Shown here one piece after another: positions 498 through 50,686 of a DNA stretch of 64,000 nt. Source of the stretch: Paraphysomonas bandaiensis (taxonomy: Eukaryota; Protista; Chrysophyceae); NCBI GenBank assembly GCA_965644295.1, contig CBFFRP010000133.1, positions 186,001-250,000 on the forward strand, given 5' to 3'. Position 1 is the stretch's first letter, and the number at the start of each line of letters is the position of its first letter. Both the position numbers and the translations under genes were made by a program. The notes under the pieces were generated by a model that was given only the letters and a program-made list of their open reading frames with translations, ran no database searches and had not been told where the DNA came from.

Positions 498-603
498 CTC
501 AAGGAATCTCGTCGCTTGCAGCTCATCATCTCTCTTCCCAGGGAACGAAGTTTTAAATGCAGGGTCCTCAGGAGTTTTATCTGAAAGATGTCCTCCTGCA
601 GAC
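498..603 (-). repeat. Inverted duplicate of two Copia segments (961-1015 and 773-811)
   Basis: 498-552 is the near-exact reverse complement of 961-1015, and 562-603 of 773-811. ORFs 448+ and 901- share the peptide SRNLV(A/T)CSSSSLFPGNEVL. Confidence 0.9.
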
Positions 604-2492
604 ACCTTATGCTTCGTGCATTCGGATACGGACTTCAGCTGTGTGAAACTCCAAAGTTAGTGCTCTTGGATTACAATGGAATTGTACGGGAAGCTAGGTA
701 TTCAGACAATGGAATGCCTTACGTTGAACTAAAGGACTTACTAAAATTACCGGACCTGACGAAGCATAAGGAGTCTGCAGGACATCTTTCAGGTAAGACT
801 CCTGAGGACCCATTGGAACTACTCCATAAGCGCTGTGGTCATGTTAGTACACACAAACTCCTAGATTTTTTCAAACACGGGTTATTTACGGGAAGTGGTC
901 TTACCAGAGCAAGAAGTCTAAAGGTGTCTGCAATTCTTGTGCTGAGTCCAAGATTACAAGAACTTCGTTCCCTGGGAAGAGAGATGATGAACTGCAAGTG
1001 ACGAGATTTCTTGAGAAAGTGTCTATTGATATTGGAGTATATGTTAACTGTCCGTCTCTCCAGGGATGTCGATATGTACTCATGCTGTCAGATGTGGCCA
1101 CCAAGGGACTTTAGGAATATCCTCTTAGAACCCGGGCAGCTTCTGAAATTGAAGAGTAGGTTGAGTCCATACTCCCCACGCATCCCGGTGAGCATAGACT
1201 TCCAGTATCATTCGGACTGGGGTGCGGAGCTGATGATGGCTTCTTATACCACGAGGGTCGTGGTTCGCAAAGTTCTGATCGTGGCATATAGAGCCTTAGA
1301 ATCTACTGGTCGAGAGCAGCTAGAGCTCCGTTACATATTGCTGATATGGTGTCTCTACCAATATCTTTCAACGCAGGTGGCACGAAAATCCTGCGAGCAG
1401 TGACGATGGGTGACATATTCTTTTACATTGGTGCAGGTTTTTAACGCCTATTGCTATATGATAAGACTTTCAATATGAGGAGCGATCGATGCTGACTGGG
1501 GGTGGGACCACAAAACAGTCAACGGAAGATGCCTCATCGGGGAGTGAGACCCCATGTGCCTTGCCCAAGAGTAGCGTTAGCACTGCGTCTAGAGAGACTA
1601 GTGTGTGTCCCTAGCTGTAACACTGCGAACCGGGCTGCGTTAGGCAAGAGGGTACACACCCAAAGAGTAATTACTAATGTGTCCACTCTGGGTGATATCA
1701 ACCTCGTATATGTGGGGAAGATGCCGTTAACATGTGCAAAAGGCAAATCTTCTGACCCTTCTGATTACTGGGAGCCTGAGCCTCTTCCGTGTAGTGAGGC
1801 AACCGAATGGAATGAGGCTCAAAGGGCAGAAAGGGATGTGCTATTTCAGCTGAAGGTTTTTGATGTCGTTGAAATGCAACCTAGTGGCCGTGCCCTCTAA
1901 TCCCGCTATGTCGACAAACAAAAGTAAAATAAGGACGGTTCGATTAAAAAATAAAAAGCACGGCACGTTGCACTTGGCTATGGACAGCAGACAGACATGC
2001 TGTTTCAAGCTGCAGAACTCCTTGTATGGTCTTAACAAATGTACTGTGTTCCTTGGACCTGCAACCGAATATGCTTCTAAGCCTACTCAGGCTACATGTT
2101 GTCTAATGCTGTTTTACCTGGTTATAGCCAGGACACACGTAAGAAGGGCAGTCGTTTCAGGGGAAACAACTCTGACATTCACATCTTTACAAACGCGGAT
2201 TGGGAGGGAGATGCTGCAACAAGACGATCCACAACTGGATATATTGTGTTTGCTCTGGTGGACAACTCACCTGGCAGTCCATATTACAAGTCACTTAGCT
2301 GCATTGAATCCAGTATTTCACAAACGGTCCAAACACATTGAACTAAAATAAAATAACATGTTCATTCAGAAGGACCATTCAATACTGCTATATTGTATCA
2401 TGTTGGAACTGATGACCAAACTGCCGATATATTACTAAATCTCTGTGGCGTGACTTATGAGAAGCCCAGGAAGAGATGCCTAAGAGAGGAAG
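588..2492 (+). mobile_element. Decayed, internally deleted Ty1/Copia LTR retrotransposon (pol remnants)
   Basis: Motifs occur in Copia order across broken frames: GAG-pre-integrase LELLHKRCGHVS (ORF 588), RT WNEAQRAERDVLFQLKVFDVV and KLQNSLYGL, RNase H IFTNADWEGDAATRRSTTGYIVF, NPVFHKRSKHIELK and GTDDQTADIL. A purine tract AAGAGAGGAAG at about 2482-2492 resembles a PPT. Confidence 0.9.
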
Positions 2493-5653: not shown

Positions 5654-6929
5654 ATGAGCCTCGGACCTTTTGCAGCTGAATTAATTGAGACCGCGAGGAG
5701 CATAGCGGCTCCTGGTAAAGGGAGTAAGTATCTGCTGCTCTGCGCTGTGGTCCCTTCACTCACTCTCTATAGTTCTTGCCGCTGATGAGTCCACTGGAAC
5801 TATTGGCAAGCGATTCGATGCCATCAATGTTGAGAACTGTGAGCCCAATAGACGCAAGTACAGACAGCTCCTCTTCACGACTGCCGGTACATATACACAT
5901 GTCGCTCTACACATATCTCTGAATAGATAGCCTGTACACATATTCCTATATGTACCCTATACATTCAGATAACTGGCCAATGTACAGGTCTTGAGGAGCA
6001 CATATCCGGCGTGATTCTGTATGAGGAGACATTGTATCAGAGCACTGATGACGGAACTCCATTTGTTGATGTTTTGAAGTCGAAGGGCATTATCCCTGGC
6101 ATCAAAGTTGATAAGGGGATTAAACCTTTAGCTGGTAGCTTTCTTGTGTACTAATTAATATTTGTAATGTTAGAATATAGGCACAAATGGTGAGTGCGTA
6201 ACCCAAGGTATGGACGATTTGGATACCAGATGTGCGAAATACTATGCACAAGGTGCTCGTTTCGCCAAATGGAGGGCAGTATTGCACATTAAAGACACAA
6301 TTGGCGCCACTCCCTCCCAGGTAGCGATTGATGAAAACGCCAATACTCTTGCGCGCTATGCTTCCATTTGCCAGCAGAATGGGCTGGTTCCGATTGTTGA
6401 ACCTGAGGTGTTGATGGACGGTGACTTCGATATTAGTGTAGCCGCCGCATGTACTGAGCGTGTAATTGCCGCTTGCTACAAAGCTCTCTCTGATCATCAC
6501 GTCATGCTCGAGGGCACCCTACTGAAACCCAACATGGTCCGGTCCGGTTCTGATGCCGCGACCCAAGCCACAGCTGATGAAATTGCTCTGGCAACAGTGC
6601 GTGTGCTGCAGCACACTGTCCCTTGCGCCGTTCCTGGTATCACTTTCCTTTCAGGAGGCATGTCTGAGGAGGATGCCTCCCTTGCACTCAATGCCATCAA
6701 CCATGCTCCCGGTCCCAGACCTTGGTCTCTGACCTTTTCCTACGGCAGGGCCCTGCAGCAGTCTTGCCTCAGAGCTTGGAAAGGTGTGGACGAAAATGTT
6801 CCTGCCGCTCAAGAAGTACTCAAGGCCCGTGCAAGAGCCAACGGCCTGGCAAATCTTGGGCAGTATACTGGTGGGGTAGGAGGCGAAGGTGCAAATACCT
6901 CTACTTTTGTCAAGAACTATACGTACTAA
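5654..6929 (+). CDS. FBA: Fructose-bisphosphate aldolase, class I (4 exons)
   Basis: [23 protein letters not shown]|[10 protein letters not shown] is joined by a GT-AG intron. It contains [20 protein letters not shown], the Schiff-base [15 protein letters not shown] and a C-terminal Tyr. No transit peptide, so probably cytosolic. Confidence 0.97.
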
Positions 6930-7240: not shown

Positions 7241-8007
7241 GTAGTGAATGACGAATTATTTGATTATTATTATATGCGTGTAAGAGTCAAAACTAATGTA
7301 GCAAAACAATTTAACTAACTACTGCTTACCTCTGATATCCTACTATTTAGCACTACGAAAATTGCTTGTGCGTCACCGCAAGCACTAAGGTACAACCACT
7401 TTTGCTAGTTCACTCAAAGCAAGCACAGTGAGAAATGAGAAAACATATAGTGTTGATATACCTGACATGTGCTGACTTCAGGAATTTTGAGTCCTTAGGT
7501 AGGAAATGTGAGAGCTGCCCACGGACGTGTACCCTCAACTAAGTCGGACTTGCACCTTTCCATGGTGTTCTTGGGGACAAGTACTGGAGATATAACGTGA
7601 GCCGCATATATAGCAGATAATTTTCTGCTCACTCATAGCCGAATGCTTGTATGGTACAAGGAACGTTAATATATGTGTCTTGCGTAGACGTCTTTGGGTC
7701 CCGACGAATAAACACGCACCCGGGAGTGGGCCACTCAAGGGCGTCCGGGTATTGGGCTGCCTGATGTAGAAGTCAAGCAATGGGCCCACCTTAAGGACTC
7801 AAAAATCCTGAAGTTAGCAGGTGTCAGGTATATCAACGTTTTGTTTGCTCACTGCATTGGCTTTGAGTGATAAAGTGAAAGTAGTTGCACCTTTGTGCTT
7901 GCGGTGACGCACAAGAAGATATCAGAATTAAGCACTAGTTAGTTAAATTGTTTTGTTACATTAGTTCTGACTCTTACACTATTGCTAATAATTAGACATT
8001 CACTACT
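7240..8007. mobile_element. Foldback/MITE-like element with 220-260-bp imperfect inverted arms
   Basis: Arm 7240-~7503 is the reverse complement of ~7785-8007. Examples: AGTAGTGAATG/CATTCACTACT, CTTGTGCGTCACCGCAAGCAC/GTGCTTGCGGTGACGCACAAG, GTTGATATACCTGACA/TGTCAGGTATATCAAC. Confidence 0.8.
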
Positions 8008-8160
8008 ACGGACGTGTAGCCCTTCAGTGTCAAGAGGTGTGTTCTAAAATCTAACCAACATGGAATCATGTAAAACGAGAATTTCACAGAGACCTTACCA
8101 CTTCAGACCTATGCCACAATCCGCAATCACACAGAAGTTGCAACCAGAGATTAAGAGTTG

Positions 8161-8183
8161 TAACCCTAACCCTAATCGAATAG
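8161..8183. repeat. Interstitial telomeric (CCCTAA)n motif plus TCGAATAG tag, copy 1
   Basis: TAACCCTAACCCTAATCGAATAG is the exact reverse complement of 49589-49611. Confidence 0.9.
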
Positions 8184-8249
8184 TTTAACACAAATTATTA
8201 CCTACTAAAAACGACGTATAATAGAAGCCAGAAAACTTGCTCCAATTCA

Positions 8250-11200
8250 CTATATCATTATGCTCCCTAAAACAATTTCCGTTGTTCTATTCACCACATC
8301 GTGCATTTCATTTAATGTACTACAAGACTCTACAATAAATATTACGGTCCGATCTCCCAACCTGCGCGCAAGAACCCAAACACCACCTCTTTGGACAGAG
8401 GACACGCGAAGACATGCTTCACGCAGACAACCCGGAGGGGCGCCACTCCCTAAAATATAAGGTTCAGAATAAGGAAAGGAAGTACAAATCCTAATATCAC
8501 TTCAAGTGTACGTAACACAATGTGAAAATGCGAATGCCAGTGGGAAGAACAATGCATAGAATCTACCAATACTCGCAACAGATCGAACCTGTTACGACTG
8601 ACATAATGTCATTAATAGCAGCTACAACCTTCGCGGATAAACACCCTGCAAATGAAAATTTAATATTGCCATGAAAAAAAGTGTACTTCCAAGTATAACG
8701 CACCAGTGACTTGTCCAGCAGCCAAAGGGAATCGCATTCTGCTATGAAATAACTGGGGGAAAATTGTTTGCACAGTTGGGGACAGTGGGGTGGGCCAGGC
8801 ATACTGAGGAGAATGTGTACTTCTGTACACATTAGCCGCCTACAGTTATAAATATTAACTATACTGTCATCATATGTTGTCGAATCGTGAATATCAATTC
8901 CAGACACTCCCAAAAATACTTGTCCATGCTACTACCTTAAACGCCACGTTGCAGTCGTTAGAGTAAATAAACCTGAGGTAAAAGAACCAATGTCATACAT
9001 TTTTCCATATACAAAGCAACATGAGTAGAGATGTAAACTAAATGTATATCATTGTACCACCATTTAAATATCGCAAATGAAAAACCCAATACACTATCGA
9101 CCTGATACAGGGTGATATATTCACAAATACTACATCAACGAGAAATGAACCCTCTCATATAACAATCCAATTATTTACTCACCCAATTCCTTCAGGAACA
9201 TCAGTTGAAGGATAGCTGCGGTGCTTCTGAATGTATGACGACGATGATGTACTTCGAGACAAGCGGCTCTTCACTCCAACTATAAACATCGTACGTTCAT
9301 AATGTACATTACGCAATTGCACATATTGTATATAGGCAACAGAACACTTCATGCTTAGAAGGACAGTAAATATACCTTTTTCGGGAATTGGCATATTGAT
9401 AGCAGCAGTAATACTCTTTTGAAGAGCCACACACATATTTGTCAATCTACAGTGCGGCAATTCGTCGCTAGAATTTAAACCATAACGTCTACTAGAAATC
9501 TCATGGCTAGTTGGCTCATAAGGAAATTCTCCCTCCCAGTTCGGAAACAATACCAGTACCAGAAAGCTATACAAAAGAAACAGTTCGCAATATTCTAGTT
9601 AAACGATAATGACGGGAAATACATCTACAAATTTCAAAACTATGTAGGGTGAATGCAGATGACAATGCTTAAAGAAGCAACAATACCTAGCCTCTCGGTA
9701 GACGAGCGCTCTGCCCGCACACACAAAACTTGATGCATCGTCGTCCATAACATCGGGGTCTGCACAAACACAAGCAGTTAATCTATGAAGATACAGAGCA
9801 ATTGAACCACCTGGATTTACACCATCAAGACAACATCCATTAGAAGTAACAAACAGTGGCGACAATGCGCCAGCCACACCTCTACTGTTGTCATTATTGC
9901 TACAGCAGTCGCTTTCCGTATTGCCAGGAACATGGACGCGAGGACACCATATATTCCTTTCGCCACTGCACATGTATGATAGTACTAATATTGCAGAACA
10001 TAGTAAGCACAATTAGAATTCATATCAAGGCATATATATCTCACTCTCTACTGACACTACACACATCGATTATTCGTCGAATATACAACATACTACTTTC
10101 AGATACAACCGAAAATATATAAAATTTCACACATAATTATTGTAGCTAAATATATATATTTCACCTACGCGTATACAGTAGAAGTCGTAAAAGTGCAATG
10201 TATAGAAATGTCTGATTTTACCTTCACTGCAAGTGGAGCTGCATATAAAAGGCTTCGAATCAAGTTCATCGGCATTGAAAAAGACACTGTCATCTTCATT
10301 GTCATCTAGTATGTCTACAGTCCCCCAGTCCACAGAAACAAAGCCACGCCTTTCGCGGAATTTCTTAGTGATGCTCTGAGCACATGTAAACTAATTCAGA
10401 TGTTTATGTAACCCTAAGCATACATAGAGCTTACAGTCAATTCGATTCTAACACTCACATCTACATGGGCCTGTTTTTTCTTCTGCATATCGCTATTGTT
10501 ATCGGAGGCTCTACGCCTTACACTTGGGAAAGTCCTGTGTATGCAGACATCAATATTCAAACGTGTAAACAAAACCAGGATGAAAGTGATACTGCTTCCA
10601 CAAATGCAACAACTTATATAGCAAAAACGATATCATCTACACTCTTCTGAATTGCGATTTTGTCAAACCTTGATTTTTTTTGCTTTGTATCATCAACTGT
10701 AGGAGAATTGGAGACAGATTTCGTGGGCGGACTTTCACTACGCGCAGTTGCCACCTAAAAAATATATCATATTAAGAGAAGAATAAGTGCATAGCACTCA
10801 AAACCTCGCAATCTCCAATAGTTCTCGATCTGGGAATTAAATCTGCCCCATTGCTAGGTGAGAACAATAGTTCTGATATTTGCGATGCCATATCACGAGT
10901 GGCAGCATGCTCCTAAATCAAAAGCATTTTAAGGATTCTGCCTTATACTATACAATCAGCAATAACGTTATCAACACCATAACCGTGTATATACTACAGC
11001 GCAATATCAGTCTATAAGTTAACACAAATAATCGGAAAAGGCCAACACACAGCACCGATCACATCACAGATGAACAGTCATATATTTAATGATAGTTATC
11101 GATATAAAACTTCAAACTGAAAGTATATATCACAAGAGTACCTGCAACTTGATGAACTCATACAAACACAGCATGTCGCAGTCCATAAGATCATTCCACA

Positions 11201-48655: not shown

Positions 48656-49269
48656 CTCTGATTCAGTCTAATTTGATGTGGATGTACTCAGTAGTGATTA
48701 ATTCCCTCCTATATATCGTATTAACTTAGAACACTGTCATTTATGGAATCAGTGTGTCAGTGTGCGGATATCTATGGCCTTTTGGGTATTATCGCTTAAC
48801 CGATTGGTAAATAGGTACCTTCTATCCGTTTAAAGTATAACTTTAGAAGGTTTTCCCTTTTTTAATTTTACTAGGAAACATGCTGACCCGATACAGGCCA
48901 TAGTATATAATGTTAAATTACGCAGTAACGACTTGCTAAAATCAAGATGAGCATGCATGACTGCTTTTACCAGTGGGTCAAAATTTATTTCTCTAGAATT
49001 ACAGATTACAGCACAACAAAAAACTGCCAGGAGGCGACAACAATATATTGCCAGCAAAAGTAAATAATAATAATAATATTTTAAAGACCAATCATAAATA
49101 TGTTACAATATATTGAAATATATAGGGCGCTAAGAAGAAGAATTAGCTCGATCGGTAGTCCGTAGAGGATACAACATGATGATCAAAACCCAATAAATAT
49201 GCAGCAACTAGTACTCTAAAACCATTCCAACTCTTCATCACTTTGGTCCTTATACTCGTCATAATCAGA

Positions 49270-49700
49270 CGGTCCATCATCAATGACCTATTGCACTGTC
49301 TTTGCGGCCCACAAGTGCTTGTTGAAGCGAAGAAAGGGCAGCAATTCGAGGCGTCGTGGGGCCCTTCCTTGTCGCAAGTCGCAAGTGCGTCATGACAATC
49401 TTGGGCTGAACAAACGCTCCACAATGATAGTTGTACTGAATATGTGCTTAGTCGAGCAATACTGGGTGTCAAGCTGTCGTCCTAACTTCTTGGTGGCTCT
49501 GTTGCTTTCTAATACAGCTGCTTTCCTTTTATTTGCCACTTTGACGACCCTCTCCGGTGATTCAGCTTTTTCTTCATCCTTTCGGAATCTATTCGATTAG
49601 GGTTAGGGTTAGGCCTCCTAACCATTCTGAATCTTCACAATGGTCTTATCGAAGGTAGTACTTTGAACGATATCAGCATCTACAGAGAGATGTGAAGCTT
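49270..49700 (-). mobile_element. hAT-type transposase C-terminal pseudogene fragment
   Basis: The minus strand reads HLSVDADIVQSTTFDKTIVKIQNG, then STTIIVERLFS/KIVMTHLR. After removing a 7-bp duplication (CTTGCGA) it continues PRRLELLPFLRFNKHLWAAKTVQ, which fits the hAT dimerisation domain. Confidence 0.8.
49589..49613. repeat. Interstitial (TTAGGG)n motif plus CTATTCGA tag, copy 2, inside the hAT remnant
   Basis: CTATTCGATTAGGGTTAGGGTTAGG. Confidence 0.9.
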
Positions 49701-50686
49701 TGCATAAAAACCACTCCATGATTTGCTTCGTTGAAAACTTTATGGCACAGCCTTTGATATGCCGGCTGTGGCTCGTGATAACTATAAAGCAAGTTGTCGA
49801 AATGTCTCTACCGAATACAGTTGTATATCACAGTATAACACTACTGTACATGGTCATATGCTATCTCCCGAGAAGGATACCATCTTTTAATCAACATTCC
49901 CAATATTTGTCTAACCGCATTGACTGGAGCAAACCACCATCAAAACGTGATGGAGAAATATTAAGCATTTCGTTATTGTTGACGTATAAATACCTCTAGC
50001 TCAAGTACAATTTATATGTATACATAATCGTGATAAACTTACCGGATTATACTCAAAGTCCAATAAATCCAGGACCAAGTAAGGTAAGTACAGCGCAACA
50101 ATATTATCGGATGATTTGGTAATCCTGTTCACTTTAAAGTACTCGTGCATGTCACCAATTATTGTCTTTGTATTATGTTCAACTGAACGCTTGTGTTCCT
50201 CCCTTTCAATGTGCCATCAAGATCTTGTTCTGTAGATCCAGGAACCACACTCCTGGAAGATAAAGACATCAGCCAGACCCAACTATGCTTAACACACGAT
50301 GCATTTCTTCATACACGACAACAAGCTATCCTTTCAAAGAGTTCACGAGGCCACTAATCCCTTCCTCTATTTGCTTGGATTGAAGTTGCTTACTGTTGAG
50401 CTCGATACGGCCGATATCGATCCGTGGCGTATCGACCCATGTACGGTTATATATGTACAGCAGTACATTGTATACATACATACATACTCCTTCGAGTACA
50501 TGGATATACAGTACTATCCAGTGGTGTATCATGCTGCTGGTATACACTCTGTACACGACGTAGTGCGGTACTGCTCTATGCATCTCACCATATCAACTAC
50601 AGCTACACAGTATACTGCTGTATACATACATATGTAAATATCTACAGCAGAGTTGTACAGGCAGCAGCACACACATACATACATAG

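Follow-up and report, generated by a model that had tools for sequence, protein, structure and literature searches.

The two telomere-like motifs in the window (the whole stretch of 64,000 nucleotides of Paraphysomonas bandaiensis DNA that was analysed) are very probably independent scars of break repair, in which telomerase served as a patch polymerase and copied part of its own RNA. Scars of this kind occur throughout the genome. They are insertions, their sequence is that of the template and the 3' flank of one locus, and the lengths of their telomeric parts peak at the template end. The original prediction, that the motifs could be telomerase-mediated break-repair scars recording the RNA sequence 3' of the template, was supported by a match to a single-copy locus on C144, by the 10-nt mode in telomeric length, by a case of apparent read-through on C591, and by comparison with paralogs.

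Two probable repair scars in the window

The 23-mer TAACCCTAACCCTAATCGAATAG is found exactly at positions 8161-8183 on the plus strand (site 1), and its reverse complement exactly at 49589-49611 (site 2), as originally described. Its chance expectation is negligible, with 0 matches in 100 dinucleotide shuffles when up to 3 mismatches were permitted. A scan of the window confirmed that these two sites hold its only multi-unit CCCTAA/TTAGGG runs, and comparison of the flanks revealed no relationship between the sequences beyond the two motifs, again in line with the earlier description. The 8-nt tag that had been proposed is indeed the same at both sites, but it did not hold up as a fixed unit, as its length varies from ~2 to 16 nt genome-wide; the 8-nt boundary had been drawn because only two examples were at hand. 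At both sites, the stretch matching the candidate telomerase RNA is longer than 23 nt (8161-8186 and 49589-49613). The telomeric part of site 1 exceeds the 10-nt template (Table 1), and at least one telomerase translocation would therefore have been needed to produce it. Part of the TTT at the end of the site 1 match may be microhomology from the broken end.

Table 1 Coordinates of the two scars and of the repeat copies around them in the window.
Feature	Positions	Strand	Length or remark
Site 1, telomeric part TAACCCTAACCCTAA	8161..8175	+ (C-strand; G-strand on minus)	15 nt
Site 1, copy of the candidate telomerase RNA flank, TCGAATAG + TTT	8176..8186	+	11 nt, identical to the putative RNA directly 3' of the C144 template
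Site 2, tag CTATTCGA	49589..49596	G-strand on +	
Site 2, telomeric part TTAGGGTTAGGGTTAGG	49597..49613	+	17 nt
Copy of the dispersed repeat family hosting site 2	49080..49760		at least 45 matches, 68-85% identity
Copy of another abundant repeat family	7652..8011		end ~150 bp left of site 1; scar outside

Both sites are internal, with chromosomal sequence continuing on either side for kilobases. The surroundings of site 1 are unique in the assembly from 8015 to 8480. The CCZ1 gene previously placed beside site 1 was not confirmed, as the ORFs at ~7500-10000 had no Pfam match; the nearest recognisable gene upstream encodes a class-I fructose-bisphosphate aldolase and ends at 6929. Pfam searches of the ORFs around both sites recovered this aldolase and an MFS transporter only.

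Elsewhere in the window, ORF fragments at 588-2351 (+) resemble a degraded Copia-type retrotransposon, as judged by eye from a gag/pre-integrase-like motif (HKRCGHV) and an RNase H-like motif (ADWEGD...TTGY). A third scar is located on the same contig (C133:164388-164401; L021), 21.6 kb before the window start, and combines exactly one template length (10 nt) with a 12-nt leader, TCGAATAGTTTG.

Scars across the genome

The original prediction depended on the tag being enriched beside TTAGGG runs genome-wide and on TTAGGG being the telomere repeat of the organism. Both expectations were borne out: the 14-mer CCCTAATCGAATAG occurs 103 times in the 62.5-Mb assembly, compared with 0 occurrences of the same pattern reversed, and the contig ends bear TTAGGG arrays. 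We retrieved 100 distinct sites, and both flanks were unique at most of them.

The variability of the tag was profiled at 100 junctions in which CCCTAACCCTAA precedes a non-C base, of which 93 were retained after seven array-internal variants were dropped. By hand tally, the full 8-mer TCGAATAG was present at 30/93 in-phase junctions after at least 2 repeats, and junctions starting with TC accounted for ~60/93; shorter tags (TCGA, TCGAAT, and TCGAATA) were also present in this sample. Slipped variants, i.e., TAA-TAGTTTGG (CCCTAA-TAGTTTGG) and TAGTTGGGTG, both match the source locus described below, and some of the diverged variants, which include TTGAATAG and TCAAATAG, are consistent with CpG decay. 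The "8-nt tag" is a leader of variable length, ~2-16 nt. The number of telomeric repeats at the scars ranges from <1 to >20 units, with an enrichment of run ends in the ...TTA and ...TTAG phases, and the stamp also opens many of the long terminal arrays located at contig ends.

Short interstitial scars were unevenly distributed between the contig strands (23 plus vs 55 minus, p=0.0004), and no such bias was detected for long arrays (9 vs 13) or a neutral 11-mer (17 vs 14). Because contigs should have no preferred orientation, we attach no biological meaning to this bias; their orientation in the assembly may, however, not be arbitrary, and this may be the source of the 23:55 ratio. Near one of the scars, at a distance of ~100 bp, two facing tRNA genes (L034:501-574, minus, and 690-763, plus; 57 bits each) were identified in a long near-perfect palindrome.

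The source locus of the leader and the repeats

The bases past the tag follow the sequence TTTGGGTG, which continues the tag at one site only, the single-copy locus L027 (G000:C144 ~108716-108745, minus strand). The locus reads ...GCAUUCUCUGGAUGCAU-CUAACCCUAA-UCGAAUAGUUUGGGUG..., or more fully ...GCGUGCAUUCUCUGGAUGCAU-CUAACCCUAA-UCGAAUAGUUUGGGUGUUUGAACUCGCG.... The match to TTTGGGTG decays slowly with distance: at least 1 further nt agreed at 77/99 sites (expected 30), at least 2 at 53/99 (8.2), at least 3 at 35/99 (2.1), at least 4 at 20/99 (0.57), and at least 6 at 7/99 (0.06). The tag and its extension are identical to the 3' flank of the 10-nt template CUAACCCUAA (C144 108733-108724, minus strand), the relationship to be expected from TERC-ITS loci, and this template has the length of at least 1.5 telomeric repeats that a telomerase RNA calls for.

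The lengths of the telomeric parts point to the same 10 nt. They show a sharp peak at 10 nt (21/100 sites, vs 7 and 4 sites for the neighbouring lengths), and the modal sequence, CTAACCCTAA, is the telomeric stretch of L027, with a U outside the telomeric repeat as its 5' boundary. Most scars have more telomeric nucleotides than the 10 of L027, in perfect register. The 5' flank of L027 was detected at one other place in the genome: 13 nt of it, TCTCTGGATGCAT, interrupt the repeats of a long telomere array on C591, in phase with them. We read this insert as synthesis past the 5' boundary of the template, that is, read-through. Taken with the 3' tags, it means that both template flanks of one locus are recorded beside telomere repeats. 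The copied portion comprises the template with at most 16 nt on the 3' side and, once, 13 nt on the 5' side, and nothing else of L027.

Scars as insertions relative to paralogs

Searches with the flanks of sites 1 and 2 returned only the sites themselves and repeat-family copies, and no empty allele of either was found in the assembly. For site 2, alignment of the repeat-family copies provided four spanning paralogs that do not have the motif. These read ...GAAATCT, followed by 37 bp (TGCAACCGCTGCTCTCTCTCTTGACGAGTCAGAGATT) and CCTCGTATCCATTCT..., and the window copy reads ...GGAATCT, followed by ATTCGATTAGGGTTAGGGTTAGG and CCTCCTAACCATTCT.... Relative to its paralogs, the window copy has lost ~37 bp and gained 23 nt (49591-49613). 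The CT at 49589-49590 that completes the site 2 tag belongs to the host repeat element in this alignment and therefore represents 2 nt of microhomology with the RNA, with synthesis starting at 49591.

Five more scars are insertions relative to paralogs, one of them (L032) a clean insertion of 19 nt and the others (L040, L045, L060, and L087) with extra filler. The paralog comparisons indicate one-step insertion at site 2 and at these five scars, and the deletion and microhomology at site 2 and the filler at L060 and L087 are junction changes typical of end joining. Because site 1 lies in unique DNA, with neither an empty allele nor a paralog, it is read as an insertion by analogy alone.

Four of the scars (L032, L040, L060, and L087) fall within ~50 bp of one position in one abundant repeat family, near ...AAACTAACGTGAGCCGCATATATAGTCAGCAGATATTGTTCTGCC..., and two of their insertion points are at most 3 nt apart. 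This cluster may reflect a break hot spot associated with the activity of the element itself.

A candidate telomerase RNA gene

On evidence from within the genome, the C144 locus is a strong candidate for the telomerase RNA gene and probably is that gene; even if the assembly lacked the true gene, the sequence of that gene would still be mirrored by C144. The genome also has a gene for TERT, whose RNA-binding domain was recognised at C426 (94 bits). Folding of the 181-nt L027 core as a single sequence gave a closed domain (z-score -2.95), and 0/200 shuffles were as good. The predicted core is ordered as a 9-bp long-range helix (GUGUGCAAA/UUUGCACAC), a hairpin abutting the template, the template, a linker, and helices, with U-rich (UUGUUUUCUUGUUUUUUUU) and A-rich (CAAAACAAAAAA) stretches predicted among the helices after the linker. 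The position of the predicted boundary hairpin (GUGCAU-UCUCUGG-AUGCAU), next to the template, agrees with the 10-nt peak. From the template to the next helix, the predicted linker measures 19 nt and the longest tags 16 nt, and in this model the linker would be a physically sensible upper limit on tag length.

The Rfam model of vertebrate telomerase RNA aligned weakly at C144 (15 bits, E 0.18; family gathering score 70), covering a CR2-like segment (GUUUUUUUUCCCGCUGUACU) as well as the template. The same model matched 0/20 scar loci included as a control, and the match was not returned in a narrower scan of 441 nt of C144. A metagenome scan with GCATCTAACCCTAATCG for homologues yielded 25 matches, all with unrelated flanks and hence attributed to chance. 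The neighbour of the candidate is a divergently oriented RRP12-like gene, for whose protein the only named close homologue is that of Ochromonadaceae sp. CCMP2298 (40% identity). The RRP12-like loci of the two nearest relatives (53% and 51% identity; L147 and L148) have different neighbours and no CTAACCCTAA. Rfam, metagenome, and synteny searches therefore identified neither a curated-family match nor a conserved homologue for C144. A (TATG)n microsatellite of ~390 bp is located between the candidate and the RRP12-like gene (L027:1715-2100, minus; C144 ~108930-109315).

A transcript of C144, from ~108450-108800 on the minus strand, would contain CUAACCCUAAUCGAAUAGUUUGGGUG. The region upstream of the candidate has neither the motif and TATA box common to the U2 snRNA genes of this genome nor the pattern common to two U6 genes. 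The four U2 genes (L138-L141) share AAAAATATTTTGGGTAAAT at ~-60 and TATAAATA at ~-30. The two U6 genes (L142-L143) have a reverse tRNA B-box-like sequence, GAATCGAACC, at ~-60 together with a TATA-like box, and the upstream motifs of both gene sets may be useful as promoter definitions for this genome. A run of U8 inside the candidate argues against Pol III transcription, which has been reported for the telomerase RNAs of plants, ciliates, and Blastocystis (PMC8287931). The literature searched reports a telomerase RNA candidate for one stramenopile only, Blastocystis (PMC8287931).

Alternative explanations

The scars could in principle be the work of another polymerase, either a retrotransposon reverse transcriptase switching template onto telomerase RNA or a repair polymerase copying the DNA of C144 (microhomology-mediated/Pol-theta type). 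The genome is rich in retroelements, and the authors describing vertebrate TERC-ITS leave the enzyme open ("telomerase or another reverse transcriptase"; PMC8537989). We nevertheless consider this improbable, given that copying was limited to the template and up to 16 nt 3' of it, plus 13 nt 5' of it in one instance, whereas retroposition of the LINE type would begin at the 3' end of the RNA. Telomeric nucleotides beyond 10, in perfect register, require repeated realignment on the template, a hallmark of telomerase, and the sharp stop at the 5' edge of the template suits a template-boundary element.

It is highly improbable that the motif derives from a mobile element that bears or targets telomeres and ends in (CCCTAA)nTCGAATAG, either as the terminus of such an element or as a severely truncated copy of one. 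At first look, the edge of the motif was sharp on the tag side and variable on the repeat side, but the tag edge proved to be graded, decaying along the sequence of a single-copy locus. Neither flank is common to other sites, for both window sites and most of the 100, and the window sites share no element body, which tells against the telomere-bearing or telomere-targeting element that the original prediction had offered as an alternative. The other copies of the family hosting site 2 do not have the motif, and they retain the 37 bp missing here. At several loci, a subtelomeric element ends in ...GGGGGACAGCGTAT(AACCCT)n and is followed by the tag; there, however, the tag lies beyond the repeats, on the far side from the element, and so identifies the healed end onto which the element became attached. 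The flank decay and the paralog alignment also led us to reject the 3' end of a truncated retroelement.

Promoters of plants and fungi are known to contain telomere-like boxes as functional elements, and a short conserved motif in ~100 copies scattered through unique DNA might suggest a functional cis-element, i.e., a telobox/Tbf1-type promoter site or a signal in the DNA for chromosome breakage and telomere addition. Such a function is equally hard to credit here, as repeat number and tag length vary, unlike those of a binding site, many copies sit inside transposon copies as insertions with deletions or filler, and the decayed variants TTGAATAG and TCAAATAG indicate no purifying selection. 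A signal would also be expected in the paralogous "empty" sequence, from which it is absent; with the tag missing from the pre-insertion paralog sequence, the de novo telomere addition signal initially suggested as another possibility finds no support. Repair by telomerase, with its own RNA as the template of the patch, is the reading that we prefer.

Comparison with known systems

The closest precedent for the scars is provided by the vertebrate TERC-ITS loci, at which telomeric repeats and a retrotranscript of telomerase RNA were inserted in one step at double-strand breaks (Nergadze et al. 2007, PMC2246262; Sola et al. 2021, PMC8537989). The junctions of these loci show deletions, filler, and microhomology (PMC2246262, PMC8537989). 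The vertebrate TERC fragment is 25-98 nt long, mostly derived from the scaRNA/pseudoknot domains, and inverted (41 loci, 22 species; PMC2246262, PMC8537989). In mouse, the first hexamer is preceded at 8/14 loci by a few nucleotides from directly 3' of the template, and in Xenopus, a template-adjacent fragment lies upstream in the same orientation at one locus (PMC2246262, PMC8537989). The scars resemble TERC-ITS in that repeats and an RNA-matching flank were inserted at breaks, with deletion, filler, and microhomology. They differ in the fragment, which is short (2-16 nt), in direct orientation, and without exception derived from the sequence immediately 3' of the template, and in number, with ~100 or more events in one 62.5-Mb genome vs those 41 loci over 22 species. 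The stamp is in addition found at the base of terminal telomeres, and the lineage is that of a stramenopile protist.

Chromosome healing, in which telomerase primes a non-telomeric 3' end via short microhomology, is known in yeast, human, and Plasmodium (PMC8012806, PMC5550746). The many arrays at contig ends that begin with the stamp are similar to healed ends, whereas the window sites are internal, their 15-17 nt of repeats do not extend to an end, and the extended end appears to have been rejoined. The literature searched did not describe healed ends with a constant stamp from the template flank, and a literature search for the tag sequence found no relevant paper.

In primates and rodents, short interstitial telomeric insertions of exact hexamers appear suddenly, with microhomology to the break end (PMC2246262, PMC7215372). 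These insertions normally start in the register of the template and have no non-telomeric leader, unlike the scars described here.

Telomere-attaching Penelope-like elements have a similar candidate in the subtelomeres of this genome. Gladyshev and Arkhipova reportedly described, in 2007, endonuclease-deficient Penelope-like elements that have ends with reverse-complement telomere repeats and are stacked at chromosome ends. The window motifs, in contrast, have no element body and are thus not copies of such an element. The repeated subtelomeric element in this genome ends in ...TTGATTGGCTTAAATTTGATTGTTAAACAGATCCACACCTCAAATGGGTAAGGAGCGATCGGGGGACAGCGTAT and leads straight into (AACCCT)n, followed by the telomerase RNA stamp and unique DNA (L011:1423-1475 and 2597-2650; L018, L051, L058, L077, and L091). 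In this arrangement it resembles a telomere-attaching element that has stacked on ends after healing; the candidate telomerase RNA locus has no copy of it.

Proposed mechanism and implications

We infer that C144 is expressed as the telomerase RNA gene, that TERT is the copier, and that end joining closes the break. A broken 3' end would pair, over 0-4 nt, with the telomerase RNA in its single-stranded stretch 3' of the template. Telomerase would then copy the linker stretch, seen as ...CTATTCGA on the G-strand, and run through the 10-nt template CUAACCCUAA up to the hairpin, which would serve as the template boundary. Translocation would follow once or twice, to give the 15 telomeric nt of site 1 and the 17 of site 2. 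The short extended end would be joined to the other broken end with no telomere grown, and at the stamped contig ends the patched end would have become a new telomere. Products of telomerase on non-telomeric ends would be expected to begin with CTATTCGATTAGGG.

On a broader scale, we lean towards the view that telomerase in this organism routinely starts on non-telomeric ends, using up to ~16 of the 19 linker nt, and often patches breaks, with at least 100 fixed events per 62.5 Mb, that the core of its RNA is U-rich/A-rich in a vertebrate-like manner, and that this RNA is probably transcribed by a polymerase other than Pol III. If true, the scars would be a natural in vivo footprint of telomerase engaging broken DNA, and they would have revealed a telomerase RNA for the ochrophyte stramenopiles, for which none is described in the literature searched.

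Finding telomerase RNA from sequence is very difficult, and here repair scars point to one locus and map the template, the 5' boundary, and the accessible 3' stretch of the candidate. They also constitute a large natural sample of telomerase on non-telomeric ends, with ~100 full-tag cases and more with shorter tags. If confirmed, patching by telomerase followed by rejoining would be a potentially common mutational process in a free-living protist, and the stamp would serve as a sequence marker by which healed breaks and healed ends of chromosomes could be dated and counted.
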